This document shows positions 7,068 to 62,432 of a stretch of DNA of 64,000 nt, piece by piece. The translations under genes and the position numbers were made by a program. Position 1 is the first letter of the stretch; each line of letters opens with the position of its first letter. Source of the stretch: Octopus bimaculoides (Eukaryota); contig NC_068988.1 in the NCBI RefSeq assembly GCF_001194135.2, positions 34,704,633-34,768,632 of the forward strand. The letters are read 5' to 3'. A model generated the notes under the pieces. The model had not been told where the DNA came from and made no database searches. It saw nothing but the letters and a program-made list of their open reading frames with translations.

Positions 7068-7096
7068 TTTCTTTGTTTTTCTCTTTGCAGGTAAGT
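7068..7096 (+). promoter_or_regulatory. Candidate recursive splice site (3'SS directly followed by 5'SS)
   Basis: TTTCTTTGTTTTTCTCTTTGCAG|GTAAGT, with 18 of 19 pyrimidines at 7068-7086 and no other AG for 31 nt upstream. No transcript evidence is available. Confidence 0.55.
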
Positions 7097-9005
7097 CTAT
7101 ATCAGCTTTGAAAAAATAAACTGGATACACAATACATTTTATTTTTAACAAATTCCTGCTTTGAGCATTTTTTCTTTGTCAATGGTAAGAAAGTTAATCA
7201 ACATAACATTACTTTTCATTTCTATATTTCATCTTCATTTTCTTAGGATATTTTATTCTTGTTTTCATCATGATTTTGTGTATTTTGATTTTTTTCCTCC
7301 CACTATTTTTACACATAAGACTTGAGTCCATGATTAGATTAGTGACATATCTAAATATTAAAAAAAGTTATTTATTACTTTACACAAAACACAAGGTAAG
7401 AATATTCATCCGTCATGCTACTTCCCATTATGACAAATCTTTAATATGTTGACATATAATGAGCAGAAGCATTAACTAATGATAGGGATGGAGATTAAAA
7501 CTAGTCACTCAAAGTTGATAGGGTAGATTAAAAACTGTGACATTGTTACTCTTTCCAAAATTATTTGCAAAAGTCTTTGGGATACCTGTCTTCTGGAAAT
7601 TGAGCTTTAGTTACAAACTTAGTTTGATAGAAGCTTCCCTATATTACAATATTTGACAGAAAACACACACAGAAGCACTCCAACTCTCTCTTTCACGTGT
7701 GTGCGCCCCCCCAAAAACCTGGTAAAGCAGTGCACAAGATATCATTTGTGCGTATGTGTTTGTACATACATGTACAGTATAATTACCAATTAAAGATGTG
7801 ATTTTCTCTGTTCTTATTCTTGTTGTTTTATACTCTGAATTTCTTGAAATTCTTCGAAGAGATATTTGAAGTTACTTGTCATACATGAAGAATTACCTTA
7901 GATGTTAATTCTACTTGCATTTATTGGTATTTGATTGATTGATATAGTTAACCACATTTACTTAACACTGTGTGTTTTTTTGCTATCTGCCTGGGTTTAT
8001 TAATCCTTCTTACTTCTTCTATGTGTACATATACATATGTGTGTGTGTGTGTACATAGGAAAAAAAAAAAACATTCAGCAGATGTCGTGGGGGGTCAAAT
8101 ATTTGTATTGATGTTGACCTAAGTATATACTGAGTCAAACTGTTAATACAAATACACATGTATGCAACATGCACACACATGACGGACTTCTTAAATGTTC
8201 CAGCATACCAGCTTCCATTCACGAGGAATCAGTCAATCAGTGGCTATATCAGAAGAAACTTGCACATGGTCTTGACACAGTGGGATCAGACTCATAACTT
8301 TTTGGTTATGATGCAAAACTTCTTAAGCAGACAACCATGCCTCTATGAATTCCACCCACAGATAAGGTATCTGTCTACACCAGCACATGTATGACTATAG
8401 GAACATCGTGAGATTTGTGAAGCAATTCTGTGAAGCAGATATTTGTGATATTTAAATTTGAAATGAGTGGCTCACTCTCAGTAAATACCTCGTATGCTAA
8501 TAGCAATTACAAGAGCCAAAGCCACATAAATACCCACTAAACAGCATTACAGCTTACAAATAATAGTAATTTAACATTACAAAATTCACTTTTCTATCAG
8601 ATTGAATCAACACTTAATGTTTTTGAAATTACCTCCCCTTTGAGAATCTTTGACAGTTGCCATTACTTTTCCTGTTTTCTTTTTTTCCTCCCTTTGTTTG
8701 TTGTTTGCTTTCTCCAACAAAAAGGTAAATGTCTTCGTTAAGGAAAGTATTTTACTTAAATCATTAAGTATATCACCTACTTAACATTACATTAGTTGTC
8801 TGTGACATTAGTCATTATTTAAAATATATCTCATGTGAAGCTTTCTTTTCATAATTAAAAATGTAAGAAAGTAATTTCTCATTCCATTGATCATCTTTAG
8901 AGATGGAAAATGCTTTAATATTTATACCTGCACTATATTTCAATTGGTTTGATGACCAATCATTATTGTGTGTCACAATCATGGATTTGTACATAGCACC
9001 AGACT

Positions 9006-9410
9006 TATCTTTTATTTACCTTTCAACTTTTACCTGTTTCGACCATTTGGCTGTAGCCATGGTGGGGCACCGTGTTGAAGGGTTTTAGTCAAATAAATCA
9101 ACCCAAGTACTTATATTTTGAAGTTTGGCTCTTATTCTCTTTGTCACTTTTGTCAAACTTAAAATTAGGAGGATGTATGCAAACCAACACTGGTCAAGCT
9201 GATGAGGTTCACACACACACACACATGCGTGCACACGCACCCACTCACACACACACACACACACACGATAGACTTCTTTATTTTACATCTATCACAAGTC
9301 TTTGGTCAGCCCAGGCTTGTAGAAGATTCAATGTTCCATGCAGTGGGATTGAACCCAAAACTATGTGGTTTGGAAGCAAACTCCTTACTACACAGACATG
9401 CTGATGCCTA
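9006..9410 (-). mobile_element. SINE family A1
   Basis: Reverse-complement homology to 4269-4692 with an internal (CA)n. Confidence 0.8.
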
Positions 9411-9530
9411 TTTCTAAAGTATCAGTGGCCTAATGGGTAAGAATGATTATTACCATTAATTTAGAAATAAAGTTTTCTAGTTTCAAATCCAGTCAAGACA
9501 CTATCAGACTAACTGAAACATAGTATAGAT

Positions 9531-9700
9531 CATCATCATCATTTAACATCCATGTTCCATGCTGTCATGGCTTGGACAGTTTGACAGGATCTAATGTTTC
9601 CAAGGACTGCATCAAGCTCCAATGTCTGCTCTGGCATGGTTTTTATGGCTGGATGCCTTTTCTAGTGGAGTGGGTGCTTTTTTCATGCCACCTGCACTGT
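9531..9700 (-). mobile_element. RTE-type 3' tail fragment, diverged
   Basis: CATCATCATCATTTAACATCCATGTTCCATGCTGTCATGG...GGCTGGATGCC. Confidence 0.75.
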
Positions 9701-11810
9701 TCAGGTCACCAAGTCGTTCACAAAACTATGAGCCCTGGGTGGGGGTGGAGGGGTTAACTTCATGCTAGGGTACAAGCAGATTACTATGGGGTGGGGACAG
9801 AGAATACTCCTGTAGAGGGATCTGCATGACTACACACATCTAGTGGGGGAAAGAGTGGAGGAGAAAGAAAAAGTGATTAGGATGACATCTGATGCCATTC
9901 AGGCATTCCACTTTCCGAAACAACATTTAGATATAAATATTATTAAACAATGTTTTTCACTTCTATAGATGAGGTTAATAGCATGGAAAATGATAATCTT
10001 ATTAACTACGACTCATTTCAGACATTTTGACATTTATGTAACAGTGGAATATATGATTTTGTCTTTACATGTGACTAGTTTACAGAACCTAACACATATA
10101 TTATGAATCATACACAACTCTTTAAAGGCGCCTGACAATGCATCTTCAAAACAGTGTCTATATGTGCTCTTTCTTAAGTACATGCCCTCTTTGAATATAT
10201 ATAAAATTTAGATGAAAATATATCGTAGAAGTAAGTCATTGTTAAAATTCTTCCTCAAATATTTAAGTACTAATCCAAAGAAAATAATGTTGTGTTGTTT
10301 TTTTCCTTTGTTAGTATTATGTCTGTTTTTCTATACTAGCAGAGGTTTGAGGAATACTTGAATACTTATAATGAGGCATTGTTTTTTCTGTCAGATGCTT
10401 TCTTGCCACTGACTCTCTACCTTTCACTTAGCTTTGAAAGTGCAAGTTTAGAGGCTGATATGTTGACAAAGAATGTGAATGACACCACCATTTTTTGCTC
10501 TTTTGCTCAATGCTTTCATGTAAAGATGAAGAATGTTAACATTCATGTACCCCACAGACATACGTTGCTGCATACACACATGCACACACATGATGGGGTG
10601 GGTTCTATCCAGTTTCTATCTACCAATTTCACTCATAAGGTATCAGTAACCTGGAACTACAGTGGAAGACCTCTGCCCAAGTTACCATATGGTTATAAAG
10701 TGAATTCCATATCCACACGGCTATGCCTGTGCCTTGTCTTAATAAAGTTATAGCATGAGGAGAAGAGACAGTATATATAGCCTTTTAGCTATCTAGCTAG
10801 TATGGTTGATCAGGATAATGCTCGACATAAACTTCATCAGGTGGATGCCATTGAGAAAACATAGACAGGTAGGTACACCTTTGTGGTGGTTGTTTTGGTT
10901 TGGAAAAGTCTGAATAAAAAGTTTAGAGTAGAGTTTGGAGTCATAGCTCAGTTAGGATGATGAAAGGGTGAAATGCACTTGAATTAGGTAAGCATGGATG
11001 GGCAAGAGTACCCCACTTTCTATTTTAGAAAGGTAAATCTGTTTGTAGAATCAGAAGAAACAGTAGGGAAGATATTACATTTCAGTATGTTAGTATTTGT
11101 TGTAGGTTAACTAGTGAAGTTTTGCCAATTTGAAATGCACATTGAGTTAATAAATCTCTCATTTGACAACTGACAGCCTAAGCAGATAATCTATAACAGA
11201 TGAGGCCTTAGAATAATATTGTCAGCTTCATGCATGAAGTATAACATAAAATGCTCGCTGAACTGTTATATCATATGATATTTGACACCACAAATGGATC
11301 TTTCATATTCAAAAAATATTGAATGTTCAGCATTGTGTTCCACGCTCAGCAGTCATCTTCAGAAATGAGTGATGCATATTTAAAATACTGATGCAATAAT
11401 AAATAACATTAGTTATTAAGCTAGATACAGCACCATGCTGTGATAAAAATTTGATATCAGGGAAAAAAAGAAAAACACAGCGATTATAATGCCAATGAAA
11501 ATCATTCATTTGGTGTGCTTGTATATAAAGATCGTGTTTATATGCACTGAGATTGACCTGAAGATTCTACTTCATACATGCATTTACCCATGATTGGCAC
11601 ACATCATGACATATACATAAAGGTGTCCACATAGCTTTATTGAAGCATGCACACATAAATATACACACTTGCATGGAAACAGATGTGGGATAGCATCAGG
11701 AAGAGCATTTGACCATAGAAATCTCTGCCTCAATGTAATTTTGTCTGACCCATAGAAGCATGGAAAAGCAGATTAAAATTAAAACAGTAGTAATCTTGAT
11801 GACGACTTAC

Positions 11811-12004
11811 ATCATCATCATCGTTTAACGTCCGCTTTCCATGCTAGCATGGGTTGGACGATTTGACTGAGGACTGGTGAAACCGGATGGCAACACCAGG
11901 CTNNNNNNNNNNGAAACCGGATGGCAACACCAGGCTCCAGTCTGATTTGGCAGAGTTTCTACAGCTGGATGCCCTTCCTAACGCCAACCACTCAGAGAGT
12001 GTAG
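11811..12004 (-). mobile_element. Young RTE-type 3' tail copy with a candidate TTACAT target-site duplication
   Basis: Near-identical reverse complement of 1-173. TTACAT at 11807-11812 and 12005-12010. A 10-N gap lies inside. Confidence 0.85.
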
Positions 12005-12397
12005 TTACATATACACGTATAAACTTAAATCTTTATATGCAGTTATATCATTCATACACACAACCATGTAATGCAAACACATTCAGGAAGGTAAACAACT
12101 GAGCTAATTGCATATGCTTAATTTATGTGTATGAACATACATATACATTTACAACATGATCGTCATGTGTCAACACTTATCTAGTTACATATAGCTTTAT
12201 GAATGTCATCATCATCATCATCTCCATTTTATGATCAGTTTCCATACTGGCATTGGGTGGGTAGGTCATTGTGGTTTGAATCAATTCTCATTCACTGTTA
12301 ATGTCTTCCAGGAAAGGTTAGTGACCACATATTGCTTGTGTGTGTGTGTGTATCTCCTTTGCCAACATGGAAGGCGGATGTTAAACGATGATGATAA

Positions 12398-12432
<35 letters not shown>

Positions 12433-12670
12433 NNNNNNNNNNNNNNNNNNNNNNNNNNNNNNNNNNNNNNNNNNNNNNNNNNNNNNNNNNNNNNNNNNNN
12501 NNNNNNNNNNNNNNNNNNNNNNNNNNNNNNNNNNNNNNNNNNNNNNNNNNNNNNNNNNNNNNNNNNNNNNNNNNNNNNNNNNNNNNNNNNNNNNNNNNNN
12601 NNNNNNNNNNNNNNNNNNNNNNNNNNNNNNNNNNNNNNNNNNNNNNNNNNNNNNNNNNNNNNNNNNNNNN
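12433..12670. other. Assembly gap
   Basis: Run of N after (TA)n. Confidence 1.
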
Positions 12671-13194: not shown

Positions 13195-13750
13195 TCAAAC
13201 ATTTAACTTCGGTGAAATTGTTTTTATGAAGCGCAGTTTCATTGCCTTTCGGTATTGTGGATCGTCCCGTGTACATTTATAAAAGGGAAAGATTTTGAAC
13301 TTTCCGTCTCCGCATATTTCCAGATGTTTACTCAATGGAATCATTCTTAGTTCTTCTTGTCGGATATGTTGCCTGTGAATTCTTGCACGTTGGCAAAGTG
13401 AGTTATTTGTTTCGCCAATGTAATTTTCTTTACAGTTTGGACAGGTGATGCAGTATATGAGATTTTGTGTTTTGCAGTTCATATCTGCATTTATTTTAAA
13501 AATAGATCCGTTCTTGAACTTTATGTGGAAACCACTTTCTATGTATTTGTAGTTGTTGGTATTGTTACACGTTCCACATCTCCTATCACCACATTCTTTT
13601 ACTATGAATTCTGGTTTAGTCTCTGATCTGAATTCTGCCCTTGTCAGGTGTTTTTTAAGGTTTTTTGGTTGGCGTCTGCTATTCCGTAAGGTGTTTTTTT
13701 CAATCAGAGTTTTCATCTTGGGGCTTTGAAGGAGTATAGGGAACTTGCAA
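13195..13750 (-). mobile_element. Penelope-like element fragment encoding a GIY-YIG endonuclease (ORF 13195-13716)
   Basis: CGDRRCGTC, NCKTQNLIYCITCPNCKENYIGET, RARIHRQHI and the terminal FIKTISPKLN follow the Penelope C-terminal GIY-YIG layout. The frame stays open upstream (FPILLQSPK). No RT is present. Confidence 0.9.
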
Positions 13751-19725: not shown

Positions 19726-20243
19726 GTAAAAGGTTTAGATTTAGATTCAAAAATTGAATATCGTACTTATGTTTAGGCACCAGAATATACTATGGTATGG
19801 TATTATATAAAAACCATTCAATTATATAAAAACCATTGATCACCTAGTTTGATTTTTTGATTTTGCTTATTTTGATTTTTTTTTATATATAGACGTATGT
19901 ATATAAGCATGCCTCTTTTTTTTATTTACATCCTACCCTTCCCATAAAAGCTTGAGCAAACAAATGGAATAAATAATCCCTTACTTGAAAAGCAGGAAGG
20001 GCATCTGGCTATAAAGCAATGCTTCAATAATATGGAAAAATGGATGTAAAACAATTAAGTGTATGAAAAATCTGCATATGTTCATGTGGTTTTGATTTAG
20101 TGGATCCTGTTAAGTAGCTGGTGTCTTATTTTATTGATTTAATACTTAGTTGGTGAAGGTGAGAAGGATTTAAACTGAAGCAGAAATATAAAACTAAATT
20201 AAAACATAGTTTGTTGTTCTTTATTTTTCCTGTTCACTACCCT

Positions 20244-20284
<41 letters not shown>

Positions 20285-20303
20285 TGATGGTGGTGATAAT
20301 AAT

Positions 20304-20760
20304 AGATGAGCGATATAAACAGAAATCAGAGAGTGTGATCGAAAATGCTAATTACAGGATTTTATTGGATTTTTCTATAGAAACTGACCATACTATTGAA
20401 GCAAGGAAACCAGATGTGATTGTAGGAGACCAAAGAAGGAAAAAAAGTGTAAGATCATAGATTTCGCAATATCATATGATAGTATTGGATATCAAAGAAA
20501 TCGAGAAAATTAAGAAATATCAATCAAAACCTTGCCTAAGAGATGAAAAGATTGTGGAACACCTAAGAGGTTGATAGATATTGGAATTATGACAGGTATT
20601 GTTGACCTGCAGGAAAGTGCCATCCTGTCTTCTGCAGGAATCCAAAGAAAGATTATTGAGTGTTGAAGAGACTTGTTGTCGCCAAACCTCAGGATAACAT
20701 CCCTACTATTTAAATTAGCATGCAATAGCTTTTGAATAATAATAATAATGATAATAATGA
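20304..20760 (+). mobile_element. R4/Dong-like LINE 3' fragment 1 (RLE endonuclease remnant)
   Basis: Frameshifted SVIENANYRILLDFSIETDHTIEARKPDVIV, CKIIDFAISYD, KEIEKIKKY, EMKRLW and DLQESAILSSAGIQRKII*. Bounded by (TAA)n on both sides. Confidence 0.85.
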
Positions 20761-20864
20761 AATAATGATAGTAGTAGTAGTAGTAGTAATAGTAGTTGTA
20801 GTAGCAGCAGCAGTAGTAGCAACAGTTGTAATAGTAATAATAGATATAATAATGCATCATCCGA

Positions 20865-22075
20865 AGGCAGGTATAGAGAAAATTGGAGAACATGGATTGA
20901 TGCAGCTGTCGCTGTCTCCAAAGACAGCAACCTTTGGATTAGACACCTATCTAAAGAAAACTGGCCAGAGCTTAATTTTGTCTGCAAATATATAACTTCC
21001 TAAAAATGCACTCAATATCGGAAGCAACAAAGATGTACATACAAGAATTGAGGATCATTGAGACTGGGGTACAATTAGATAAACTAGAAGAACCCACTGT
21101 GACAGCAAAACAGATAAAAACACTGGCCAAATGGGAAGTCAGTGCTGTGAAATGCATAATAAAGTAAAGCATTGCATGGCAAATATCCTACAAAGGCCAG
21201 TTATCCTGATGCTGATACAAGTACAACTCATCAATAGTTGACTGCATTTGTTCTTAAATATAGAGTGGAGGGCTTCATCATAACACCTCAGGACCAATGT
21301 TGCCCACCAAAATCTACCAAGCAAGCATTTTAAAAAATGGTGCTGATCCTGCCTTCCACTTTTGTGGTGCAACCAGAGAAACAACTGACTACCTCATCTC
21401 TGGATGCTTTATGCAAGCCTCAAATGAATGTATTAATTGCCATGATAAACTTGGCCAGAATTTGCACTGGACCATATGCCATAAGTCTACATTCCTATAT
21501 GAGAAGAATTGGTGGGAACATACAGTTGTCTAAATAGTAGAAAATAAAGATATCACCATTCTTTGGAACTCTAGTATTCAAACTGATCATTCTATACAGG
21601 CCAATAGACCAGATATTGTGGTAAAAAAGAATCACCTTGACAAAACTTGTCTACTCACAAACAATATTTCTGTAAAAACATTTTTTTAAAAGATAAGTTA
21701 AGATAAGGACCTTGAAATAGAGGTCTCAAAAATGTGGCATCTAAGAACAACTATACCTGTGTTGATTGGCACCTTTGAGACAATACCAAAAGGCACTCTT
21801 AAACACTATTGCCAAATACCAGGAAACCACAAAGCATCAGAAAAAAAACATTGTCAACTTGAAAATACCTGATTCTATTAAAACTCTTTCAAAACTGAAA
21901 TATTACAAATTCACCGCAATCTTAGTTTTCATATTCTGGTCTCTTTCCCATACTGTATATCATTGGTAATCATAAATAACATCCATAGTAAAATATCCAA
22001 CCTGCTGTTACTTGAGCTCTCAGGATGAGACTGGGAACAACTCGTTAGAAACAAAATAATGATAATAGTAATAAT
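20865..22075 (+). mobile_element. R4/Dong-like LINE 3' fragment 2 (zinc-knuckle and RLE remnant)
   Basis: LPTKIYQASILKNGADPAFHFCGATRETTDYLISGC (decayed CCHC), HDKLGQNLHW, ILWNSSIQTDHSIQANRPDIVV and KDLEIEVSKMW, with multiple stops and frameshifts and a TAA-type tail. Confidence 0.88.
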
Positions 22076-26527: not shown

Positions 26528-26970
26528 CTTGGGTTGTAAGCTGGCAGAATCATTTGCGTGTTGGACAAAATGCTTTGTAGCATTTCTTCCAGCTCTTTAT
26601 GCCCTGAGTTCAAATTCCACTGAGGTTGACTTTGTCTTTCATCCTTATGGAGTCAATAAAATATGTACCAGTCAAGTACTGAGGTCAATGTTATTGCTTA
26701 AACCCCTCTCCCAAAATTTCAGGCCTTGTACCTAGAGTAGAAAAAATTATTATTATTATTATTATTAAGATAGCAAATTAGCAGAACTGTTAGCACACCA
26801 GGTGAAATGCTTTGCAGCATCTTGTCTGTCCTAATATCCTGAGTTCAAATTGCTTTACATCCATTTGGGTTGATAAATTAAATACCAGTTGAGCACTAGG
26901 GTTGCTGTAATCGACTAGTCCCTTCCTTGCAAATTTCAGGCCTTGTGCCTTTAGTAGAAAGGAGTTAAGA
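26528..26970 (+). mobile_element. Two head-to-tail SINE family B copies joined by (ATT)n
   Basis: Each runs (CTG/TTA)GCAGAA...CTGAGTTCAAATT...AAATTTCAGGCCTTGT...AGTAGAAA; spacer ATTATTATTATTATTATTAAG at about 26747-26768. Confidence 0.85.
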
Positions 26971-27262: not shown

Positions 27263-27924
27263 NNNNNNNNNNNNNNNNNNNNNNNNNNNNNNNNNNNNNN
27301 NNNNNNNNNNNNNNNNNNNNNNNNNNNNNNNNNNNNNNNNNNNNNNNNNNNNNNNNNNNNNNNNNNNNNNNNNNNNNNNNNNNNNNNNNNNNNNNNNNNN
27401 NNNNNNNNNNNNNNNNNNNNNNNNNNNNNNNNNNNNNNNNNNNNNNNNNNNNNNNNNNNNNNNNNNNNNNNNNNNNNNNNNNNNNNNNNNNNNNNNNNNN
27501 NNNNNNNNNNNNNNNNNNNNNNNNNNNNNNNNNNNNNNNNNNNNNNNNNNNNNNNNNNNNNNNNNNNNNNNNNNNNNNNNNNNNNNNNNNNNNNNNNNNN
27601 NNNNNNNNNNNNNNNNNNNNNNNNNNNNNNNNNNNNNNNNNNNNNNNNNNNNNNNNNNNNNNNNNNNNNNNNNNNNNNNNNNNNNNNNNNNNNNNNNNNN
27701 NNNNNNNNNNNNNNNNNNNNNNNNNNNNNNNNNNNNNNNNNNNNNNNNNNNNNNNNNNNNNNNNNNNNNNNNNNNNNNNNNNNNNNNNNNNNNNNNNNNN
27801 NNNNNNNNNNNNNNNNNNNNNNNNNNNNNNNNNNNNNNNNNNNNNNNNNNNNNNNNNNNNNNNNNNNNNNNNNNNNNNNNNNNNNNNNNNNNNNNNNNNN
27901 NNNNNNNNNNNNNNNNNNNNNNNA
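27263..27924. other. Assembly gap
   Basis: Run of N after (CA)n. Confidence 1.
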
Positions 27925-28540: not shown

Positions 28541-30530
28541 NNNNNNNNNNNNNNNNNNNNNNNCCACACACACACGTATTCACATACATCATAAGAAGAA
28601 CAGTATTTCTGGCAGTGGTTTGTGTACTGTGTTCAAATGTGGGTTGAGGTTGTGGGCATGGGGGTTCCAATAGAATTTTTCTGATTAATCAATGTCCACT
28701 CCTCTGTTATCTTACTTCCCATATCTGTATTGCTCATTCTCTCCCACCTTTCTCTCTCCTCATGAGTTGTGGATCCCCCCTTCCCATTATCTCACTCTTA
28801 TTTGCATCCTGCTCTCAGTTTTTCTCTTTCTAAGCTGCTGTCTGTATATTTGTCTGTCCTTCTCTAACCTCCCTCACACACACACACACACACACACTGG
28901 CTGTTTTCTGCCTTCTTTGATTTCCTTCCCCCTCTCTCTCTCTTTCTCTTCCTCTCTATCACTACTGAGGGAAGTAGAGGCTCTCATTCTATCACTTCTA
29001 ATTTTTTTCATCTTCAGTTTATGGGAAATGAGCACATCTAGTTTTCTGATTTATACTTCCAAATTCAGATACTGATTTGACTTTCTATTATTACTGTGAT
29101 AATGCTAGTGCATTGGAAAAATCATTAGAACTTTAGACAAAATATCTTGAGGTATTTCTTCCTTACCTTAAGTTCTATGTTCAAATTTAACTGAGGTTAA
29201 CTTTACTTTTCCTTCCTCTGAGGATGATAATGTGCAAGTCCTGTAGTGTTGACGAAGACATTGAATAACACCATTTTCCTTTCATTGTTCTGGGGTTGAT
29301 AAAGAACCAGGCTATGATAGTGAATTGGAGAAATTACTAATATGTGGAATTAGATACTTTGTGGCACTTGCTCCAGCTCTTTGTGTACTGAGTTTAGACT
29401 TTACCTTGGAGCCTAAAAAGCCCACTCACCAATCCAGTATAGTATGTAAGACAAATCTTCAAAACATGCCAACACCATACAGATGCTGCTGGATCTAGTC
29501 AAAAAGTACATATGTATGTGTGTGGGGGTGGGGTCTTCCAGCTGGATCAACAAGTAACCTGATAATCATCCGAGACATAATATGAATTTATATGATACCA
29601 GAAAACAAAAAGTAAGTAAATAAGCAAATTTTGTAATTCCCTTCGGCTACTTTGTTTCTCTTTTCTCTTTCAATATGTGGTTATTTTTTATTTAACCTCA
29701 TGTTAGCCAGTATACATTCAATCAAATTATCAAATGTTTATTGTATGTTTATGACAATGTTATCCACTATGCTCTTTCATAGCTGGGTATGGATTGAGGG
29801 AAATTTTGTTGCTACATTTAGCAGGCTGAACAGGTATCAGCAATATGCAAAAGTTCCCTTTCTTGATCAAGTTGAACTTTCCTTATTGGCTCACTGCTGG
29901 CTTTTGTTTATGAATGGGCTTTTTTTATGGTGAAAGACTGTAATGGCTTTTAGTTCACAGTTGTGCCTATTATAAAAAAAAAAAAAAAAGAAATGAAGAC
30001 AGGTCCTGAAGAGCAATCAAAGAAGATCAATGGTTCCTATGTTATTGCTGGCATTGCATAATGGCAAGCAAGGATCAAGAAACTTTGTTCTCTATCATGA
30101 AGACCACTCAACTGTGAAGCAGGTACTGTCAGTGTGGTTACAGTTCATTACCCCAAACTATAGCTACATTGTAGAAATAATACATTGGCTTGCACTTCTG
30201 AGACTGTTAATCTTGGGGTGAGGTGTGGAATTGAGATTTATCTTTCATCTGATTATCACTGCAGAAACTTGCCACTTGCATGGATCCATATGACGATACA
30301 CAGATCCATGAACTAAACATAGCTCTTGTTAGCTGGCACCTACTTGACAGTCAGCCATGGAAGGACTCACACAGAAGTGGCTTTCTATTAGGCCAAAGCA
30401 TGATGTATCTTGCAAGTGTGCTCAATCTGTGGAACGCTCCCCTGTGCATTTAATTGGTCACCTCCGTGCCAAAGGTTTGCTTACTTGAGTAATTTCCTGC
30501 AGCTACTTCAAATGTAACTTCCAGCAATAC

Positions 30531-39250: not shown

Positions 39251-40065
39251 TGTTTGATGTGTGTGTATATATATAGACACACGCATGCACATATGTATAT
39301 GTGTGTGGATGGGTATATATATATATATATATGTCTACATACACATATGTATATGTGTGTGTTCATTTATAAATGTATAAGTATTTGTATATATAGTGGA
39401 AGAACTGGTTAAGTTGCCAATGACATGACAGTGCAACAGATCGTGTGAGATGACATGTTACCAGGCTGTCAGTGTTAAGGGTTGCTAGAAACCCAACAGG
39501 ATTAAAACAATGCATATCAAATGGACAGAGGAGTTAAACATATGGTCAGTTGATGTAAAACCCATGGATTGTCAGTCCAGTTGTTCTATCTGAAAAAGCG
39601 TGTGCATTTCTATACACTATTCACTCTCTATAATCAATTTTATTCACAGGAATGTTTTGGAAAACACACAATGGATCTTTCACACAGTCCGGTAGTGATG
39701 GGGAGTAGAGGAAGTATGTAATTTCAAAACCTGCATGTAGGTAGCTAGGAAATCTGGGGATCTTATCTTTGAAACTATGGTAATGGCAAGATTTGGCAGC
39801 ACTTCAAGTACTTGAGCCATCTTTTTCAGAGATAATAGTTCTTACCTGTTAATCAGGAAAGACCTCATACAGGTGCTCTAAACAAAGCTTCCCATATTTT
39901 GGAACTGGCCATCTATCCCACAGCTAGCAATTGTGTTCTCTTTGTGGGCTTCCATGATAGCATCTGAGAAATTTACAATTTTCCAAGAAGTGGATATATA
40001 GGGACTTCAGTTGACTTTCACTATATATGTATTGACATGTATATGTATATATGTGNNNNNNNNNN

Positions 40066-42097: not shown

Positions 42098-43875
42098 TGT
42101 GTGTGCGCTCGTTGGGTGGTGGTGGTGGTTGTGGCAATGGAAGGAAAAGGTGGAAGAGGAGAATTTATTAAGGGTGGAAATTTGCTTTCATTGGTGGCAT
42201 GAAATTGTAAGTTGTGATTTATGGATATCTTCATATAATGAAAAGTTAGAGTGGGAGGAGACTTTTTCTAGGTGGTGGTGGTATTCTAAACGATGTGTGT
42301 GAGGAGATTGGTGATGGTAGTAGTGGAGCACATTATAAGGAATGGTGGTATTTAAAAGATGAATGGGCAGTATGAAATGTATATTCCAAGGTGTGGGTGA
42401 GGCATGATATAGGGCCATTTAGAGATGGGGAAGATGAAGCTAGGAGATTGTTGTTGTCTTATATCTTATTGAACCATTTGAATAGCTTAAATAATTTGTT
42501 TTACCTATGCACCCCCCCCCCCCNNNNNNNNNNNNCCCTACACATAAGATGTAGAGAGAAGGAGAGAAAAGGAGAGAGAAAGAAAAACTGGTTAATTGAA
42601 GGCATTAGAGATAGACATAATTTTTGAAAGAGAAGGAATAAGGCACAAATCAGGACTTTGAAATTATTGTTATCATTATTCATGATATTGATAATAATGT
42701 AGCTGAGTTATTGCTAATTGTAGATGGTGTTGATACTATCATTGATGGTATTTCCATTAACATTGATGTCTATGATGTTGATGGCATTCTTCAATAACAA
42801 TGCTGCAGTGTCGATGTTAGTGAGAATTGTTGACTTCGATATTAGCATTGTTTTTTTGTTTTTTTTTCTGACATTATTGACATTGTGGTTGACATCATTA
42901 TCTATGTTGTTGATAACACTGTTAATTCTGTCATTGATGTTGCTGTTATCCATTGATATTTACATCATTGTTCTTGATATCATGATATCAGTAATATTGC
43001 TGTTTAGGCCCTAGTGGATCTTGATTAAAGGTATTCCAACGTGGACTACTTCTAGAAGGAGCTTTTTGTCTTCTAATACCAAAGATCATTTCTGTTATTA
43101 AACTTTGTTGGTAATCAAAAGCAGAATTTAAGGTTAATGTTGCTACTGTCTCTACAACAGTTGCAGTTGTTGCTACTGCTGCATCCCAAATGAGCAGGCA
43201 GTAGCACTTTTAACTATAGTTTTCTCACCATCTTTTAAGACATATGCTGTTGGATTGGATAACAATATGTGAAAGACAACAAGGTGATTTTTGTGGAGAT
43301 GAGATACATCAAGCTGAACAAAATCAAGGAACAAAATAAATTGCTCCTGGATTTGTTGTTTAGATCCATCCCAGATGAGTCTTCTTCAAGCAGACCTGTG
43401 GATGAAAGGCATTTTAGCCAGGGCCATCCTGTCTCTTTAGAGGCGTCTAGTAATATAATATATGTAGTCTTTCCTTTTACAATAAAGTAGAATTTGATTT
43501 GAGAAAGATTTGGTTGCTATTTCAGATATCCACACAGAAGCTTCCCTAGTGGCTTTATTTTCTAATGTTTGTGTTTAATGATGGTAGAGGAAAAGCAAAG
43601 TAAGATTGTTAATTTAGATTCCACTGTTACAAAAGATAGTATGGACAAGTATGTATGTGTTTCTTTATACTGATATACATATGTATGCATTTGTGTATTT
43701 ATACACACTATACTGCACACAACATGCTTATTTAAATTCTTCAGAAAGGTAAACTGCTATAGATACGTGTTTTTGGAAGGAATGGTGTTGATATTTACTC
43801 AAATAAACACACCCTATATATGTAGTGTGTATTTATGCATGTTTGTAGGGGCATGTGTATATGTATGTATATATG

Positions 43876-47513: not shown

Positions 47514-48325
47514 TCAATGCCTTAAATCTAGCAGTTCAATTCCATAGTCCTCTTTCAGTTTTGTATAATTAGTCCTTTTCGGCAACTTGTCTCTATAGCC
47601 GATGACTTTCCACCAATCAATGCCTTTATCATTCTTTTTTACTATTCCCCATTGTTCTTTGTTTACCAAATAACACATCATAGTCTCACCATCATCATCA
47701 TCCACGAATTCTACTTCCGCCATGTCCTTCCACTCGTTCAATCGTTTTACTATGTCATCCCCCGCGTTCTCATACAGAACGCAAGCAAAACAAACAGGGG
47801 GAGGGGAAATCTTATTTTTATCGTGTGTGTTTGTATTTTTTTCCAGTTTTCTTGTTGGAGGGGATTGGGTAGGTTTGGTGTCTGTATGGGGAGGGTGAGG
47901 TGAAAAGGGAGCGGATGGGCCTTGGGTGGGTTGGGGTTCACAATTACTTACTTTCTTTCTTTTTCTTTTTTTCCTCCTCACGGCTCTTTCCCATTCCTTA
48001 TCTTCTGCAGTTTCTTTTTCCACTTCTTGTCTCCTCTCTTGTGGTGGTGGCTGTCGCTCCTCTACTATTTTGGGTGGTGTAGGGCAGTTCGCTCTTATGT
48101 GTCCCTTCAGGCCACATTTGAAGTAACATGGAACTCTTCCTTCCACCCTAACAGTCATAGTTATTTCGTCCATGGTTATAGACTCTGTAATCTATTCTAC
48201 TGTTTCTTTTGACCCTTGGACTATCATCTCCAGTTGCTGACCTCTCCAGTTAACGCAGTCTTTTTTCTTGGCCTGGAGCACTACTATGTTGTCCTCATTA
48301 CCACAGAGGACTGCATCTGCTACCC
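47514..48325 (-). pseudogene. gag/LINE-ORF1-like zinc-knuckle protein remnant (219-aa open part at 47514-48173)
   Basis: VRVEGRVPCYFKCGLKGHIRANCP (CCHC knuckle, C-X3-C variant), followed by Pro-rich, acidic and basic (RRKKRKRKK) tracts. Protein-like sequence continues upstream (WVADAVLCG...NWRGQQLEMIVQG) across a stop and frameshift. Confidence 0.7.
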
Positions 48326-53629: not shown

Positions 53630-54855
53630 ATATCAAGTGGTGGATGTAGTTTGCTGCACCAACCTCAGCTCTTGACTGGGTTTATTTGTCTATCTATAAG
53701 AGAAAGAGAGAAAATGAAAGAAAAAAAAAAGAATGGAATTTAAAAGCAACCTCAGCCAAATTTAACTCCAACTGTATAGAGCCATACTTTAATAGTGTAA
53801 GGTATTTTTGTTTGATGTTCAAATGATTCTGCCAATCCATTGTCATTTACCATTTGCTTTACAACAGTTTCTGATTTAGGCACAAGACTAGCAATTTTAG
53901 GTTTTGACCTCAACAGGATTTGAACTCAGAATATAAAGAGCCCAAACAAGTACTGCATGGCTGTTTTTCAATGCCCTAATGATTCTATCAGTTCACCACC
54001 TTGCTTATTAATTATAAAAATAATAGTACTTTCTAATTTAGACACAAAGCTAGAAATTTTGGTGTGACAAGTTTAGTTAATACTATTGACCACAGTACTC
54101 AGAGCTTTATTTTATTGCTGATAGGCTAAGTTTACCTTGTTAAGATTTAAACTCAGAACATAAAGATCTGGAACAAATAATGCTAAATATTTCTGCCAGT
54201 GTTCTAATGATTCTCCCCACCTGCCAATTGAATAATAAATGCAAAAATCAGCATTACTCGGAACTGCTCACGTATTGCGTAAATGTCTGTCTGACTGAGG
54301 TCCTTGTTTCGACTTCACAGACAGTACAAATCCCCTTCAATCAACAACATCACGATATTGGATACTGTGCGATGTCTTAAATAATAATCTTTTCTACTAT
54401 AGGCACAAGGCCTGAAATTTGGGGGAAGGGAGAGATTCAATTACATCGACCCCAGTACTCAACTGGTACTTAATTATTGACCTCGAAAGGTTGAAATGCA
54501 AAGTTGACCTCAGCAGAATTTAAATTCAGAATGTGCTGATGGACAACATGCAGCTAATCATTTTGCCTGGCATGCTAACAATTCTACCAGTAATATTAAT
54601 AAAAACTTTTTCTACTACAAGTGCAAGGCCTGAAATTTGGTGGCTGGCAAGTGCTAGTTAATTACATTGTGACCCCAGAACTCAGCTGGCACTTTATTCA
54701 TCCCTACTCAACTGGTACATATTTTATTGATCCCAAAAGGATGAAAGGCAAAGCTGACCATGGCAGAATTTTAACTCAGACGATAAAGCTGGACGAACTG
54801 TTTCTAAGCATTTTGCCCAACATGCTTACGATTCTGCCGCCGGCTCACTGCCTTA
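53630..54855 (-). mobile_element. Cluster of five same-orientation SINE family B copies
   Basis: Units at about 53630, 53865, 54025, 54390 and 54605, each with the GCACAAG...TTT(G/A/T)AACTCAGA...ATTCT...C(A/C)CC layout. Confidence 0.8.
54239..54388 (+). mobile_element. R4/Dong-like LINE extreme 3' fragment
   Basis: 54239-54298 translates MQKSALLGTAHVLRKCLSD*, followed by an 80-nt UTR and AATAATAAT. Confidence 0.8.
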
Positions 54856-56596: not shown

Positions 56597-56745
56597 CACC
56601 GAGGCGATGACTACTGACCGAGACCTTTGGAAATGTGCTGTGCGTGAGAAGACCCGGCAAGCCAAGTGAGATCGTTGCCAGTGTCCCTGGACTGGTTCTT
56701 GTGCGGGTGGCACATGAGATGCACCATTTTGAGCGTGGCCATTGT
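56597..56745 (+). mobile_element. Short RTE ORF-end and UTR fragment
   Basis: Translates TEAMTTDRDLWKCAVREKTRQAK*, homologous to the end of the RTE ORF near 1680-1750. Confidence 0.8.
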
Positions 56746-57309
56746 GGGTCTCTGTCATTGCTCCATATCCTTGATCTAAATGTCTTCTATTACCACCCTG
56801 CCATCACAGTCACATCTTGAATGTGCATACCTATTTCAAAATACTGAGTACTCCTGTAACACATCCTGCTATCACATTCTTCTCACTGCAATCATTTATA
56901 TTTCTGTACTTTTCTGTCTATATTGCTCGTGCTTCTTATTCTATTAAACAGGCAGAACATGGCTCTGAAGTTCTTTTAGTTGTGTCAAGGACATCTCTAT
57001 CTCCGTAGTATTGGTGTCATGAAAAATGAATCCAATACGCTCTGTAACATGAAAGGCTGTGAAGGCCCTTTAGTCTTGTTGAGTACATGACACCTCACTA
57101 GTGCTAGTGCAAAAGGCATCTATGCACTCTATAATGTGATTGGTGTTAGGGAGGGTGGGTGAGGCCCTCTTAAGTATCTGGATGACCAGTACCCATGAAT
57201 ACAAACTCTGACTATGATAGTGGATGTAAAATAATAATGATACACAACCCCATACATTTATGTGCATATACATAACTATGTATATGCATTTTTGTCTATG
57301 CACACGCGT

Positions 57310-57341
<32 letters not shown>

Positions 57342-57711
57342 TCACATGTGTATGTATTTTTCTGTGTGCAGGTATATAGAATAAAAACCACAAGTTTTGA
57401 ATATATATATATATCTATACATATATATATGAAGTGTTCTCTGCTATATTTCACAGCTAATATTATGTTTACAATATATTATACAAACACCTATTATCAA
57501 ATTTGATAATGTGAGGCGGGAAGCTTTATTATTACAGGAGCCACCTAGGGGTTGTACGTCTCAACACCTCCACCATTATAACTCCAACAACGACAACAGC
57601 ATCAAGAATGAATATCGTTATTATGAGTACCTGCTGATAATAATGATATTCCTGCTGCTACTAATGTCCTAATAAATAAATCTACAATCACTACCATTCC
57701 TCTGTATTGCT

Positions 57712-57742
<31 letters not shown>

Positions 57743-58109
57743 CCACCACCATCACCACATGGTGGAGATGGGATACATTTAGTAGTTGTTTGCATTCAGT
57801 AGTAACATATTTTCTGATGTAACTAAAGAAAATAAGTGAGTTATTTTGAATAACAGCGCAGTGTAACTCCTAACTAGCTGGGTTGGGTCATTCATTCATT
57901 TTCGTAGTTTTTTTATATGGCTTAGTCACCAAATTATGGGCATCACTCATACCCAATTTTTTGCAGGATCTTAGAGACTGATGAGGGAGATGGGTAGGAA
58001 ACCAGTGGCCAATCTCTAAATGTTTTTAACAGAGTTGTCTGTGAAAACTACCTAAGTTCCAGGTAATGGCTTTATGTTGAGTGATTGATGTGATCTACTA
58101 ACCAAAATG

Positions 58110-58330
58110 CTCTTTCTACTATAGGCAGAAGGCCTGAAACCTTGAAGGATGGTGGGGCTAGTCAATTACATCAATCCCACTTCTGAACTTGTATTTCTTC
58201 TATTGACCCTGAAAGGATGAAAGGCAAAATTCACCTTGACAGAATTTGAACTCAAAATGTATAGCTGGAAGAAATTCCACTAAGTATTTTGTTCTGCATG
58301 CTAGCAATTTTTCCTGCTCGCTGCCTTTCT
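58110..58330 (-). mobile_element. SINE family B
   Basis: CTTTCTACTATAGGCAGAAGGCCTGAAAC...GAAAGGATGAAAGGCAAA...GAATTTGAACTCAAAA. Confidence 0.85.
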
Positions 58331-59120
58331 ACTTACCTAAAATATAAGGCCAGTGCTGAGGAAGTCCAGAAAGACTGAAACATATCCTGCACTGTCACTG
58401 TACTTACCAAAGATTAAACCAACCCACACTCCATATCCTCATTCAAGTTTTAATTTATTTGGATTCTGGTGTTGTGTTTCTTGTCCTTCTAAATCACAAT
58501 TAGCCAATTTATTTATTCTTTATAAACATGTAATGTTCTTCTTTATAAAGATATAATATTAATTAATTTTCTTGCTTCTTCTTTTTTTCTTTTGGTGCAG
58601 TCTTTTTCTGTAAGCTCTACTTAATTGAATACTTCAGATTTATAAGAAGTCCATTGGGAGTAATATATGAGTCTGATAAAGCATAAATCTTTCTTTCTAG
58701 ACTGCTGACCATAGCTATATCATGAGATTCTTTACTCTGTGGCAACACTTTTTTCCATCCTATCCTTGTCACAATCTTTTCATGTTTTCATCATTCCCAT
58801 AACACAGGCAAATGTACCCCCTTGAAGTACATGAGAAATTGTGAGGGTATGTGAAGTTTGGAAAAACATTGGAATTTTGAAGTAACCACATCCATTTGAT
58901 TGTGATGTGTGCATCTAAAAAACACGAGGAGAGCATTTTGCTTTCTTTTCCCCTTATTGTTGTGAACAAGTGTTTCAGCAATATTTATAGCCAAAATGTT
59001 CCATGCAAGATTATCAATTGAGAATGATATTCTGGTGTCCCTTGCTGAAACTATTTCTTAAATTGAGTTACTTCTTTAGAAGGAGCCAAGCTTGTTTGTC
59101 TCATTAAAAATTTAACATAA

Positions 59121-59363
59121 CCCTCTTGTTACCATACTTCTAATGAAATACCCTGATTGTTCATATAATACCCTGATGTTGTTTCAATTAATTTTAAAAA
59201 TAATGAAGAATTTAGTAAAATAATTTTGTTGATTATTAAGCTATTGTTTGGAATATAAATTAACATGAAATTTTGATGGAAAGTTTTAATTTAGATCACT
59301 TTAAAGCAGCAAGTTTATTTCATAGCACCTGAAGCAATCCCATGTGGGATGGTATTCAAAGGA
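59121..59363 (+). mobile_element. TTAA-type MITE family F
   Basis: CCCTCTTGTTACCA ... TGGTATTCAAAGGA termini; body shared with 45581 and 60306. Confidence 0.7.
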
Positions 59364-60179
59364 TTAGCTTTAAGGAAATAAACTTTTTTTATGTGGGCAC
59401 AAGACTACACATTTTTGTGTAAGGGTATGGTACTTTATTGACCCCAGAAGTGATCTAAAGTCATTAAATTAGATTAACAGCAAATGATACATGTCAGTTG
59501 CTTGTTCTGTGGTGTTTAACCTTTTTATGCTATATCTATCTGTCTCTTTTATCTGTCACTTTTATTGTTTAAAGTGGCAAGCTGGTAGACTCATTAGAGT
59601 GCTGGACAAAATAATGCCTTGCATTGTTTCCTTTGTTTAGGTCTTCAGTTCACTTCTTACTCATGTCAATTTTGCCTTCTGTTCAGATCCAGTAAAATAC
59701 AAACACTGCTGGACATGATGAAAAGATATGACTGAAGCCCCAGCTGTAACAGAAGAGTGCTGCCCCTTACATCCTCTTACCAATAGATTTACCTAAAACA
59801 CTAAACTTTTTTCCCTCTAAAGTCACATCAGTATATATGGATTTAAAGCTACTTTGTAGCTGATACATTCTCTCTCTGTGTTTGTTATATCACTGAACCA
59901 GAACTGCTAGCTAGTCACAGTTATAAAAAGACTAGTTACCTGCCTTCTTTTGTATTTAGTTTGTTACTGGCTGAAGAAAAGGGAAAATATCTGTTTTATA
60001 TGGAAATTCTGAGTTCCATCACATCCATCAGAACTGTGTGTGTAGACTATGTGCAATCTATACACATAGCTCTGTTATCCTTTAATTCCCTTAAAATAAT
60101 TCATTGTGAATTTTAGAATAGAATTAACCCTATCTTTTATAAAGAAACTGTATTCTATTTTGACACATGTGGACATAAC

Positions 60180-60181
60180 CA

Positions 60182-60260
<79 letters not shown>
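60180..60260. repeat. (CTAT)n tetranucleotide microsatellite
   Basis: Direct reading. Confidence 0.95.
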
Positions 60261-60305
60261 TTGTCTATTTGACTGGCTGTCTATTTATGTCACTTTTATT
60301 ATTAA

Positions 60306-60526
60306 CCCTTTTGTTACCATTATTTCTGTTATCATGCTCTGTTTCTTTCAATTAATTTTAAATATAAAAAATAATTTCGTAAAACAACTTAGTTATCATT
60401 AAGCTAGTGTTATGAACATAAATTGTGACTAACGTTTGGTGGAAGATTTTAATACAGAACTTTTGAAAACAAGATATTTGTACTACAGAGCCAGAAGCAG
60501 TTTCAGGTGGGTTGATATCAAAAGGG
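60306..60526 (+). mobile_element. TTAA-type MITE family F
   Basis: TTAA|CCCTTTTGTTACCA ... TGATATCAAAAGGG termini. Confidence 0.7.
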
Positions 60527-61585
60527 CTAGCAGAATCATTAGAATGTTGACAAAGTGCCCTGTAGTACTACTTATGACTCTTTATGTTTTCAGCTAAATT
60601 CTTACTAGATTACCTGTGCCTTTAATTCTTCCTGGATTACTAAAATAATGTTCAAGCCTAGTACTTGGGTGGTTAATAGTATGTGTTTATCTCCTTCCCC
60701 AGCAATTGTTGGCTTTGTACCCAAACCAGTAACCTTTATTGTTTTTGTTTCCCCATTAGCATCACTACCATTAGCATCACTGTCACAAACTACCACGGGA
60801 TCACTGTGCATGTGGATGAATGGCTTAATCTTTTAAAATTTACACGTCTACCTTTGCGAAGAAAAAAAAGAAAAGCAGTTGAAGCCCTAGTTTTGCATAC
60901 ACACACACAGAGAAAAAAATAGCAATTTGTTCAAGCTGAAATGTTTCCATTCTCAGATCTACTAAAAACTGACCTGGGCCTAAATAACACCAATAATAAG
61001 GAGCATTACACATCACTGAAAGTCAAGCTTAATCTCTACTATCATTCACTCTCCACCAAACACACATGTACATTATGCACATTCACACATACACTGTCAT
61101 AAGCACTTCTTCCAATGCCTGTATTTTAGTCGTAGGAAGACCAGATTTCTGCTTCAACACCTTACAAATGTATACAAACAGTATTTTACATGGAAATGCA
61201 TGTTAAAATTTTAAACATACAGATGTACATATTTCTCTACGACTGTCAAACTGTCGCTTATGTCTAAACATATTTTCAACATGACTTGACTCAGAGCAAT
61301 TTGTGTTTTTACTTTACTTCTGGTTTCTTTTCCTTCCTACTTTTACTACGTGTCTTCCTCTTACCATCTCAACTTTCTGAACAAGAGCTTAAGCTTGAAA
61401 CATTGATGACACTTTTACATTGTTTTACATTGAACTAATTGTTAAATTTTGTCTTCTGCAGTGTTATTTGTCATAAATTTTGAAATTATATGTGTGTGTG
61501 TTTGTATGCACATACCTCCATGCACACATATAATGTGTATGTATTTGTGTTTGTATATATGCTTATATTTACACAAATATTAAAA

Positions 61586-61617
61586 CTCACTTTTGTTAAT
61601 TTTGGTTTCAGGTGAGT
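61586..61617 (+). promoter_or_regulatory. Candidate recursive splice site 2
   Basis: CTCAC (branch-like) TTTTGTTAATTTTGGTTTCAG|GTGAGT, with no other AG between 61462 and 61609. No transcript evidence is available. Confidence 0.5.
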
Positions 61618-62432
61618 TGCAGAATTTACTGGGAATTATTTGGCTTGTGTATGTATTTATTTATATATCTATATCTATATAATATATGTATGTGTGTGTA
61701 TGGGTTTTTATATATGTATATATTTATATATGTATGTGTACACATACACAACACACACACACATGTAGAGTTCACAACTTGAAAGAATCTGAGACCAGGT
61801 CAGTGTCAGTATGTTACTTTGAAAAATTGGTATTTCCTTTGCTTTGTTGCAATGTCTCTCATCATTTTAACACACCTGACAGGCAATTTCTCTTTACACT
61901 AATGCCCCCATCTTTTTTCTTTTACTTTTTTTTTTTGAAGAATGATTTCATTTGAGAGACAAGGCAAGAATAGGCACTAGTATGACCTCTTCACCACAAC
62001 CATCATCATCATCATTATTATTATAACCACTCTATCATACTTTTGTTGTGTGATCTTTGAAAAGGCAAGAACGAGTGTTTAGATTTATTGCAAGGAAACA
62101 AGTATGTCTGTCTGTAGGCAAAGAAATTGTCTTGGATAGAAGAATGCTGTCCTGAATGGTAACTGGGTCTGAAATAGTAGGAGCATTCATAATGCTTTTA
62201 TTTTGGCAGCTATGAAGTCTTAGTACTTAGAGAGAAAGAGAGAGAGAGAGAGAGAAGGAAGGATAATGATGGAAGGACGGAGAAATGGATTTAGTTTCAA
62301 CAATGGAATGCTGCCTTTACCTCGAAGGTATAAATGTAATAAATGAAGTAGTTTTAAATGAGAATGAAGAAGTCTGAGAATTGGTGCTGCAAAAATGTAA
62401 ACCATTATGTTGGCTAAGAAAGAGAAACAAAG

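Follow-up and report, generated by a model that had tools for sequence, protein, structure and literature searches.

A candidate recursive splice site in a 64-kb exon-free stretch of octopus DNA

Genomic context

The window, i.e., the whole stretch of DNA analysed here, comprises 64 kb of the Octopus bimaculoides genome with a GC content of 35%, in which SINEs and microsatellites are abundant. Coding exons were not detectable on either strand across the whole window, in line with the original prediction, which had recognised none between two plus-strand sites, 7090 and 61611. Both sites are named after the last position before the junction, which is marked by a slash (ttgCAG/GTAAGT at 7090, ttcAG/GTGAGT at 61611). 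The features considered are as follows.

6830..7035, plus strand: copy of a tRNA-type SINE directly upstream of site 7090, context and not the source of its pyrimidine tract
7063..7090, plus strand: polypyrimidine tract and 3' splice-site AG (ttatgtttctttgtttttctctttgCAG), 15/16 pyrimidines, top acceptor score
7091..7096, plus strand: GTAAGT, consensus donor, which splicing to the upstream exon would regenerate as a 5' splice site
7091..7184, plus strand: putative cryptic RS-exon of 94 nt, 27% GC, stops in three frames
7185..7190, plus strand: downstream donor ATG/GTAAGA, weaker than GTAAGT, that would define the RS-exon
61588..61617, plus strand: second motif match (ttttgttaattttggtttCAG/GTGAGT), 11/16 pyrimidines, judged to be at chance level

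The window is long, exon-free, transposon- and microsatellite-rich octopus DNA, either a giant intron or intergenic. It shares 76 repeat matches with an O. bimaculoides chromosome locus, and the closest named relatives of its RT remnant are O. bimaculoides proteins (83-85% identity). Searches of the whole window with Rfam at gathering thresholds and with a tRNA scan gave no matches, nor did a homology search with a 219-aa CCHC ORF. Considered as a possible gene-body marker, CpG depletion gave an o/e value of 0.21 in the window and 0.34 in the single comparison locus. All assembly gaps adjoin simple repeats except that at 11903-11912, which has an identical 24-mer on either side and represents an unmerged overlap. 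The nearest gap lies more than 3.7 kb from site 7090 or 61611, and 954 N fall between the two; both sites are unaffected, and the spacing of 54.5 kb given in the original prediction is therefore approximate, although the motifs themselves lie where it had placed them.

With regard to a host gene, exact-product look-up of three ORF products, 13195-13716 (minus strand), 7270-7452 (plus strand) and 8158-8394 (plus strand), found none on record in annotated assemblies, and the O. bimaculoides and O. sinensis loci reached via transposon-derived proteins had no enclosing host genes listed. In unique sequence the plus strand shows a T>A skew of +0.063 (positive in 7/8 bins), the sign expected of the sense strand from the strand asymmetry of introns; the GC skew of the window is zero. 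The T>A skew fits plus-strand transcription and may partly reflect minus-strand transposon remnants or their orientation. The lower count of AATAAA on the plus strand (65 vs 92) was dropped as strand evidence because the T>A skew accounts for all of it. The prior for an intronic window is lowered by the report that the O. bimaculoides genome is mostly intergenic (Macchi et al. 2022, PMC9476566).

Motif counts and splice-site scoring

The pyrimidine tract was measured as the number of pyrimidines (Y) in the 16 nt at -20..-5, and AG/GT sites were ranked by a combined score, the sum of acceptor and donor log-odds from generic metazoan rather than octopus-trained matrices. Chance expectations came from re-pairing the real acceptor and donor halves of each strand and from 500 Markov simulations.

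Sites 7090 and 61611 are the sole plus-strand matches to YAG/GTRAGT in the whole window, as had been predicted; the minus strand holds one match, at 58338. Under Markov models of order 0-3, between 0.4 and 1.1 matches would be expected per strand, a range that includes the original rough estimate of about one, and the bare motif count is at chance level. When scored in context, the same two sites are the highest-scoring AG/GT sites of the plus strand. Elsewhere the best combined score was 12.8 (minus strand) and 12.7 (an independent 14 kb of octopus sequence).

Sequence features of site 7090

At 7090, a 3' splice site of exceptional strength abuts a consensus 5' splice site, the two meeting at AG/GT. 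Its acceptor (13.9 bits) is the top of 3,409 plus-strand AGs (runner-up 12.45), and only 1.25% of plus-strand 16-mers match or exceed its tract. CAG and GTAAGT together form the sole CAGGTAAGT (the 9-nt U1 complement) on both strands of the window. The combined score of 22.9 was reached in 0/500 Markov simulations (highest value 22.2) and is unreachable from the plus-strand pool of acceptors and donors with 7090 left out. Sites of this grade are expected at about 0.01 per strand (0.009 from the minus-strand acceptor and donor pool); pyrimidine counting gives 0.95 x 0.0125 = 0.012 expected sites per strand. Site 7090 is about 100-fold rarer than the chance expectation for a window of this size. 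The AG-free zone upstream measures 31 nt and is the tract itself. A strict yTnAy branch motif is not present at -15..-50; the closest approach, aTtAt, places its A at -25.

The putative RS-exon (7091-7184) contains an AATAAA at 7115, carries stops in all frames and ends at a donor weaker than the one with which it opens. This donor, at 7185, scores 8.6 as a 9-mer and belongs to the 1.2% of GT sites that score >8; since such sites occur at 0.73 per kb, the chance of one within 94 nt is about 7%, so that the downstream weaker donor is supportive rather than strong evidence. A second downstream donor, AAG/GTAAGA at 7396, scores 10.9.

A SINE- or repeat-borne origin of the tract was rejected: five aligned SINE copies share no similarity beyond about 7030-7035, some 25-30 nt short of the tract, and self-BLAST of the window found no second copy of 7040-7200. 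The region had no match in the O. bimaculoides chromosome locus. With regard to conservation of the motif, two metagenome scans with 22-mer and 29-mer cores of 7090 gave no matches. Five strong splice-like signals also fall within a span of 320 nt at other places in the window, on both strands; the local cluster was dropped as independent evidence, as equal density is found at 47.8 kb (plus strand) and 59.9 kb (minus strand).

Comparison with known systems

Ratchet points of Drosophila have been described in Ubx, kuz and Bx and at hundreds of further places (Burnette 2005, as cited in PMC2773006; PMC6110457; PMC8605326). Pai et al. (2018, PMC6110457) found RS acceptors to exceed ordinary acceptors in strength, and a model with cryptic RS-exons has been put forward (Joseph et al. 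2021, PMC8605326), which the weaker donor at +94 and the stops downstream of 7090 match. Judged by its sequence, 7090 has every feature by which Drosophila ratchet points are recognised at that level: a stronger-than-ordinary acceptor joined to a consensus donor in the (Y)nNCAG/GTAAGT core, a weaker donor downstream that would close a short putative cryptic exon, stops in all frames of that exon, and unique, non-repeat sequence. It also shares with them a very long exon-free setting. It differs in that the host is a cephalopod mollusc and the putative cryptic exon measures 94 nt rather than the ~50 nt typical in flies. Fly sites are defined by conservation, sense-strand intron context and RNA intermediates, whereas 7090 is known from sequence alone; the pattern in flies is a conserved SA/SD island with AGGTAAGT invariant and a drifting cryptic-exon body.

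In insects and sea urchin, the motif is enriched 4-22 times on the sense strand of introns >50 kb (Shepard et al. 2009, PMC2773006), which makes the mechanism plausibly widespread in invertebrates. Like the RP-sites predicted in that study for sea urchin, mosquito, bee and beetle, 7090 was identified from sequence by combined acceptor and donor scoring around an invariant AG/GT; the RP-sites were supported by genome-wide enrichment in a set that included no mollusc, whereas the present case is a single site in one window. In vertebrates the motif occurs without sense-strand enrichment (PMC2773006). Vertebrate RS-exons (Sibley 2015; Blazquez 2018, PMC6224609) are comparable in that exon definition comes first, followed by competition between the regenerated 5' splice site and the RS-exon donor, and their hosts resemble the giant introns of octopus in being repeat-rich. 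They lie in long neuronal genes, and the fully suppressed intronic sites established among them number a handful. A 2026 preprint on the sequence features of recursive splicing in humans concerns the 5' ends of first introns, which fall outside the window.

Site 7090 also resembles a deep-intron pseudoexon or poison exon in having a strong acceptor and a donor around a short, AT-rich, stop-containing segment. There is no reason, however, for a pseudoexon to open with a perfect 5' splice site as this segment does, and it is the AG/GTAAGT juxtaposition that marks the recursive type. No report of recursive splicing in octopus or other cephalopods was found in the literature searched.

Interpretation

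Weighing these features, we tentatively conclude, with confidence that falls a little short of even, that the window holds a single plausible candidate for a recursive splice site, or ratchet point, on its plus strand at 7090/7091, and a chance motif match at 61611. A plus-strand transcript, the use of 7090 and the order of events are inferred from the anatomy of the site and from analogy with the systems above. During transcription of a long plus-strand intron, the acceptor at 7090 and the donor at 7185 would be recognised as a 94-nt cryptic exon, which would be joined to the upstream exon with removal of the first part of the intron. GTAAGT would then abut the upstream exon and recreate a consensus 5' splice site; this would outcompete the weaker GTAAGA, so that the cryptic exon would be removed with the remaining intron and leave no trace in the mRNA.

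The most serious alternative is that both 7090 and 61611 arose by chance in T-rich noncoding sequence and that neither has a function. It fits the bare motif count, which is at expectation on both strands, the score of 61611, which corresponds to the expected random maximum, and the lack of a canonical branch motif upstream of 7090. With about 0.01 such sites per strand in each 64 kb, an octopus genome of about 2.7 Gb would still be predicted to contain several hundred as good as 7090 by chance. The mostly intergenic nature of the genome (PMC9476566) points the same way. Against this, 7090 scores above 500/500 simulations and above all recombined same-strand pairs of acceptor and donor, is followed at a fitting distance by a weaker donor and lies on the strand richer in T; selection bias is modest, because the window was not chosen for an extreme score. 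Chance is a real possibility that we nevertheless consider on the improbable side.

It is unlikely that 7090 is an ordinary exon boundary, i.e., the acceptor of a cassette exon (non-coding, UTR or poison) or the donor of a short first coding exon. As a cassette exon, 7091-7184 or 7091-7395 would begin with GTAAGT by coincidence; as a first exon, the frame from the ATG at 7046 to 7090 would encode MSMKKNYVSLFFSLQ, which resembles the start of a signal peptide. Such a boundary would be compatible with the strong acceptor, with the strong donors that follow at 7185 and 7396 and with the in-frame ATG, which is evident from the sequence itself. Flies and mammals both have annotated 'expressed RS-exons' (PMC8605326, PMC6224609), so that the border between an exon boundary and a recursive site is gradual. 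However, a perfect GTAAGT would arise by accident at an exon start in about 1-in-1000 cases by our estimate, and the candidate exons have 24-27% GC with stops in all frames or a low-complexity translation. The purity of the tract points to an acceptor and not to coding sequence. For a conventional coding boundary, there are stops downstream and, upstream, only a 15-codon ATG-initiated frame by the SINE; any such first exon would begin within or beside that element, and no partner exon is detectable in the window.

Least probable, and unsupported, is the two-site system of the original prediction, in which 7090 and 61611 would both serve as ratchet points and a single giant plus-strand intron would be excised stepwise, tens of kb at a time: the sites do have the top plus-strand AG/GT scores, 61611 has a branch-like CTCAC at -23 and a donor (CAG/GTCAGT) 187 nt downstream, and several recursive sites per intron, roughly in proportion to length, are common in flies (PMC6110457), but the combined score of 61611 (15.5) equals that of the best random AG/GT expected in 64 kb. 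The simulated maximum was 14.8-15.3 +/- 2, a score of 15.4 was attained by the best site in 37-45% of simulations, and 0.43-0.81 sites scoring like 61611 are expected per strand. Strong pyrimidine tracts had been claimed at both sites, which holds for 7090; the tract of 61611 (11/16 Y) is matched or exceeded by 19% of 16-mers and compares with 10/16 Y at the minus-strand control site. The acceptor context claimed to be good at both is likewise the best of the strand at 7090, whereas 61611, with an acceptor at the 95th percentile, does not rise above chance in its combined score. As for the supposed AG-exclusion zones, that of 7090 coincides with its tract, and the 148-nt zone at 61611 is a product of the flanking degenerate (TG/TA)n tracts (61485-61580 and 61646-61770), in which AG cannot occur. 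The putative 187-nt RS-exon at 61611 is itself mostly TG/TA microsatellite. Site 61611 is judged a chance-level motif match whose claimed context features are microsatellite artefacts.

Biological implications

Octopus introns are among the longest of invertebrates, and we know of no established mechanism by which the long ones are accurately removed. That recursive splicing of the Drosophila type, with cryptic RS-exons, operates in cephalopods, with 7090/7091 as the first example, is a possibility to which we give somewhat less than even weight. If 7090 is unused, two bare YAG/GTRAGT matches per 64 kb are simply the yield of chance, and context scoring alone separates candidates from noise. 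Its use, on the other hand, would make it the first molluscan recursive splice site, and comparing ratchet-point motifs between the sense and antisense strands of long cephalopod introns would then be a simple, cheap and worthwhile genome-wide test. The idea has been advanced that repeat-mediated folding of introns replaces ratchet points (Shepard 2009, PMC2773006); operation of the mechanism in octopus would contradict it, as recursive splicing would then persist where giant introns match those of vertebrates in their richness in SINEs and LINEs. It would also extend the mechanism to the Lophotrochozoa and argue for its bilaterian ancestry.

Motif counts and splice-site scores

The two plus-strand YAG|GTRAGT matches of the original prediction, at 7090 and 61611 (each numbered by the last base before the junction), are exact in position and number, and the minus strand of the whole window holds a single match, at 58338. 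The estimate that the bare motif arises by chance about once per strand is borne out by Markov models of order 0-3, which expect 0.4-1.1 matches per strand; the count thus carries no signal. Because the real argument was one of context rather than of count, all AG and AG|GT on both strands were given log-odds scores, with the composition of the window as background and with acceptor and donor matrices that are generic metazoan and not octopus-trained.

Scored AG|GT sites (combined score, acceptor plus donor log-odds)
7090, plus strand: 15/16 pyrimidines at -20 to -5; combined score 22.9; about 0.01 expected per strand
61611, plus strand: 11/16 pyrimidines at -20 to -5; combined score 15.5; 0.43-0.81 expected per strand
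58336 in the scoring (the match at 58338), best site of the minus strand: 10/16 pyrimidines; combined score 12.8

The third-ranked plus-strand AG|GT, at 5230-5262 (gttctccctctctacattctttag|GTGATT), scores 14.1 with an acceptor in the 99th percentile and is within the chance range.

The acceptor at 7090 (13.9 bits) ranks first among the 3,409 plus-strand AGs (runner-up 12.45) and is directly followed by a perfect GTAAGT. The window contains CAGGTAAGT, the 9-nt full complement of the U1 5' end, at this position alone, both strands included. A separate 14 kb of octopus DNA reached a combined AG|GT score of 12.7 at most. Three estimates of the chance rate of a site of this grade agree: recombination of real acceptor and donor halves gave 0.009 in the minus-strand pool (in the plus-strand pool the score was unreachable once 7090 itself was excluded); the motif rate multiplied by the share of 16-mers containing 15 or more pyrimidines gave 0.012 (0.95 x 0.0125); and none of 500 Markov simulations (order-2 or order-4) reached the score (largest 22.2, mean maximum about 15 +/- 2).

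Strong pyrimidine tracts and good acceptor context had been claimed for both sites, and this stands for 7090 only. The combined score at 61611 equals the maximum expected of random sequence and was reached by 37-45% of simulations; its tract, TTTGTTAATTTTGGTT, is at a level met by 19% of 16-mers. The AG-free zone of 148 nt, originally taken as splice context, is a product of the two degenerate TG/TA microsatellites that flank the site (61485-61580 and 61646-61770). With score and tract at chance level and an AG-free zone made by microsatellites, the pair is therefore one outlier and one chance match.

Anatomy of site 7090

A tRNA-type SINE copy (about 6830-7035) lies directly upstream of the site, and similarity among five aligned copies ends at about 7030-7035, which leaves the tract and AG|GTAAGT in unique sequence. 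A weaker second donor, ATG|GTAAGA (8.6 bits), starts at 7185, 94 nt downstream; it belongs to the top 1.2% of GT sites (>8 bits), and the chance of one so close is about 7%. The 94-nt segment after 7090 (7091-7184) has 27% GC and stop codons in all three frames. A strict yTnAy branch motif is absent from -15 to -50, where the nearest sequence is aTtAt (A at -25); this counts slightly against the site.

The region around 7090 packs five strong splice-like signals into 320 nt, but other parts of the window hold clusters of the same density on either strand, and this one was therefore rejected as evidence. An AATAAA at 7115-7120 (plus strand), 24 nt downstream of CAGGTAAGT, is probably a coincidence, the plus-strand rate being about one per kb; it is conceivable that CAGGTAAGT instead acts as a U1 site suppressing a nearby poly(A) signal.

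Composition, repeats and assembly gaps

The window has 35.5% GC and is dense in interspersed repeats and in (TA)n, (CA)n and (TC)n microsatellites (194 tandem-repeat arrays); 76 repeat matches, at most 91% identical, are shared with a 20-kb O. bimaculoides chromosome piece. Together with the protein relatives of the remnant at 2007-2955, these matches mark the window as octopod, probably from O. bimaculoides or a close relative, and as neither vertebrate nor fly. No coding exon was detected on either strand: stop-free segments resemble AT-rich noncoding translation and transposon fragments, and none of the open stretches bounded by a good acceptor and a good donor was coding-like. Pfam matches in the window were limited to the first remnant listed and a sub-threshold GIY-YIG domain, and ARAGORN called no tRNA genes in the whole window.

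Mobile-element remnants and open reading frames
2007-2955, minus: non-LTR reverse-transcriptase/PHD remnant (RT and PHD-finger domains; closest named relatives are O. bimaculoides proteins, 83-85% identity)
13195-13716, minus: ORF of 173 aa with GIY-YIG nuclease motif (Pfam E 2.6e-4, slightly short of the curated threshold), probably from a Penelope-like element, as its endonuclease end
20200-21900, plus: LINE-like C-terminal region of a non-LTR retrotransposon remnant (recognized by eye, without Pfam match)
47514-48173, minus: intact ATG-to-stop ORF of 219 aa, gag-like in look, with CCHC zinc knuckle CYFKCGLKGHIRANC and a central part that is basic and rich in proline
6830-7035 (plus), 26897-26960 (plus), 54035-54093 (minus), 54383-54454 (minus) and 62860-63010 (minus): tRNA-type SINE copies with B-box-like GAGTTCAGATCCC and conserved 3' block AAATTTCWGGCYTTGTGYC

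A search of 5.8 billion proteins gave no homolog of the 219-aa ORF at E<=1e-3, and it fits no Pfam family; it may be an orphan or a lineage-specific retroelement protein.

Assembly gaps
3109-3360: (TA)n on both flanks
11903-11912: 10 N, with the identical 24-mer gaaaccggatggcaacaccaggct directly on each side
12433-12670: (TA)n on the left flank
27263-27923: (CA)n on the left flank
28541-28563: (TC)n on the left, (CA)n on the right
40056-40065: (TG/TA)n on both flanks
42524-42535: poly-C on both flanks

Simple repeats or homopolymers adjoin six of the seven gaps; at 11903-11912 the gap is an artefact of assembly, overlapping contigs having been left unmerged, and no sequence is missing there. 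The gaps make the 54.5 kb between 7090 and 61611 only approximate, and leave the motif observation unaffected, none lying within 3.7 kb of either site.

Strand and intronic context

On the plus strand T exceeds A (skew +0.063 in unique sequence, positive in 7 of 8 bins), as would be expected if it were the sense strand; the GC skew, however, is zero. Three of the four recognizable transposon remnants lie on the minus strand, which alone would give plus-strand T-richness and possibly does so here. CpG observed/expected is 0.21 (0.14-0.32 per 8-kb bin), with a TpG/CpA excess of 1.38, as against 0.34 at the O. bimaculoides locus L001, a sole comparator that proves nothing. Such depletion is striking for a genome with <10% of CpGs methylated (PMC9476566) and could mark a germline-methylated gene body. 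The prior for an intronic window is 0.15-0.5, because the octopus genome is described as mostly intergenic (PMC9476566), whereas intron and intergenic content have been argued to be roughly equal in animals overall (PMC5534336).

Comparison with known recursive splicing

Drosophila ratchet points have the form (Y)nNCAG|GTAAGT and occur in long introns, with a 20-fold excess over the antisense strand (PMC2773006). Their acceptors surpass ordinary ones in strength, and the majority of very long fly introns contain one or more ratchet points (PMC6110457). They depend on a short cryptic RS-exon followed by a donor; this exon shows little conservation, is mostly out of frame, and is skipped as the regenerated donor wins (PMC8605326); vertebrate RS-exons follow the same exon-definition logic (PMC6224609). 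Sense-strand enrichment in introns >50 kb extends to mosquito, bee, beetle and sea urchin but not to vertebrates, against an antisense background of about 0.1 per 100 kb, in a survey without molluscs (PMC2773006). Full-text searching of the literature yielded no cephalopod case of recursive splicing. Candidate 7090, with 7091-7184 as putative RS-exon, resembles Drosophila ratchet points in all features readable from sequence, whereas membership of that class is defined by sense-strand intron context, conservation and RNA intermediates.

We tentatively favor the reading that 7090 may be a functional recursive-type splice element and 61611 a chance match; the recursive-splicing proposal would then be reduced from a two-site system to one good candidate. 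Function is modestly favored by the good placing of the weaker donor and by a strand skew of the matching sign; the generic matrices and missing branch motif count modestly against it. That both sites are chance matches is somewhat less probable. Chance alone would yield about 0.02 sites of 7090 grade per window, both strands counted; if octopus used ratchet points at invertebrate-like densities, genuine sites of comparable quality should be about as frequent or somewhat more so, with the uncertain intronic prior allowed for. It is unlikely that 7090 is the edge of an ordinary exon, whether non-coding, poison or first. Least probable, given how readily simulations reach the score of 61611, is that both sites are ratchet points of one intron. 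If 7090 is indeed functional, it would be a recursive splice site in a phylum in which none has been described so far.
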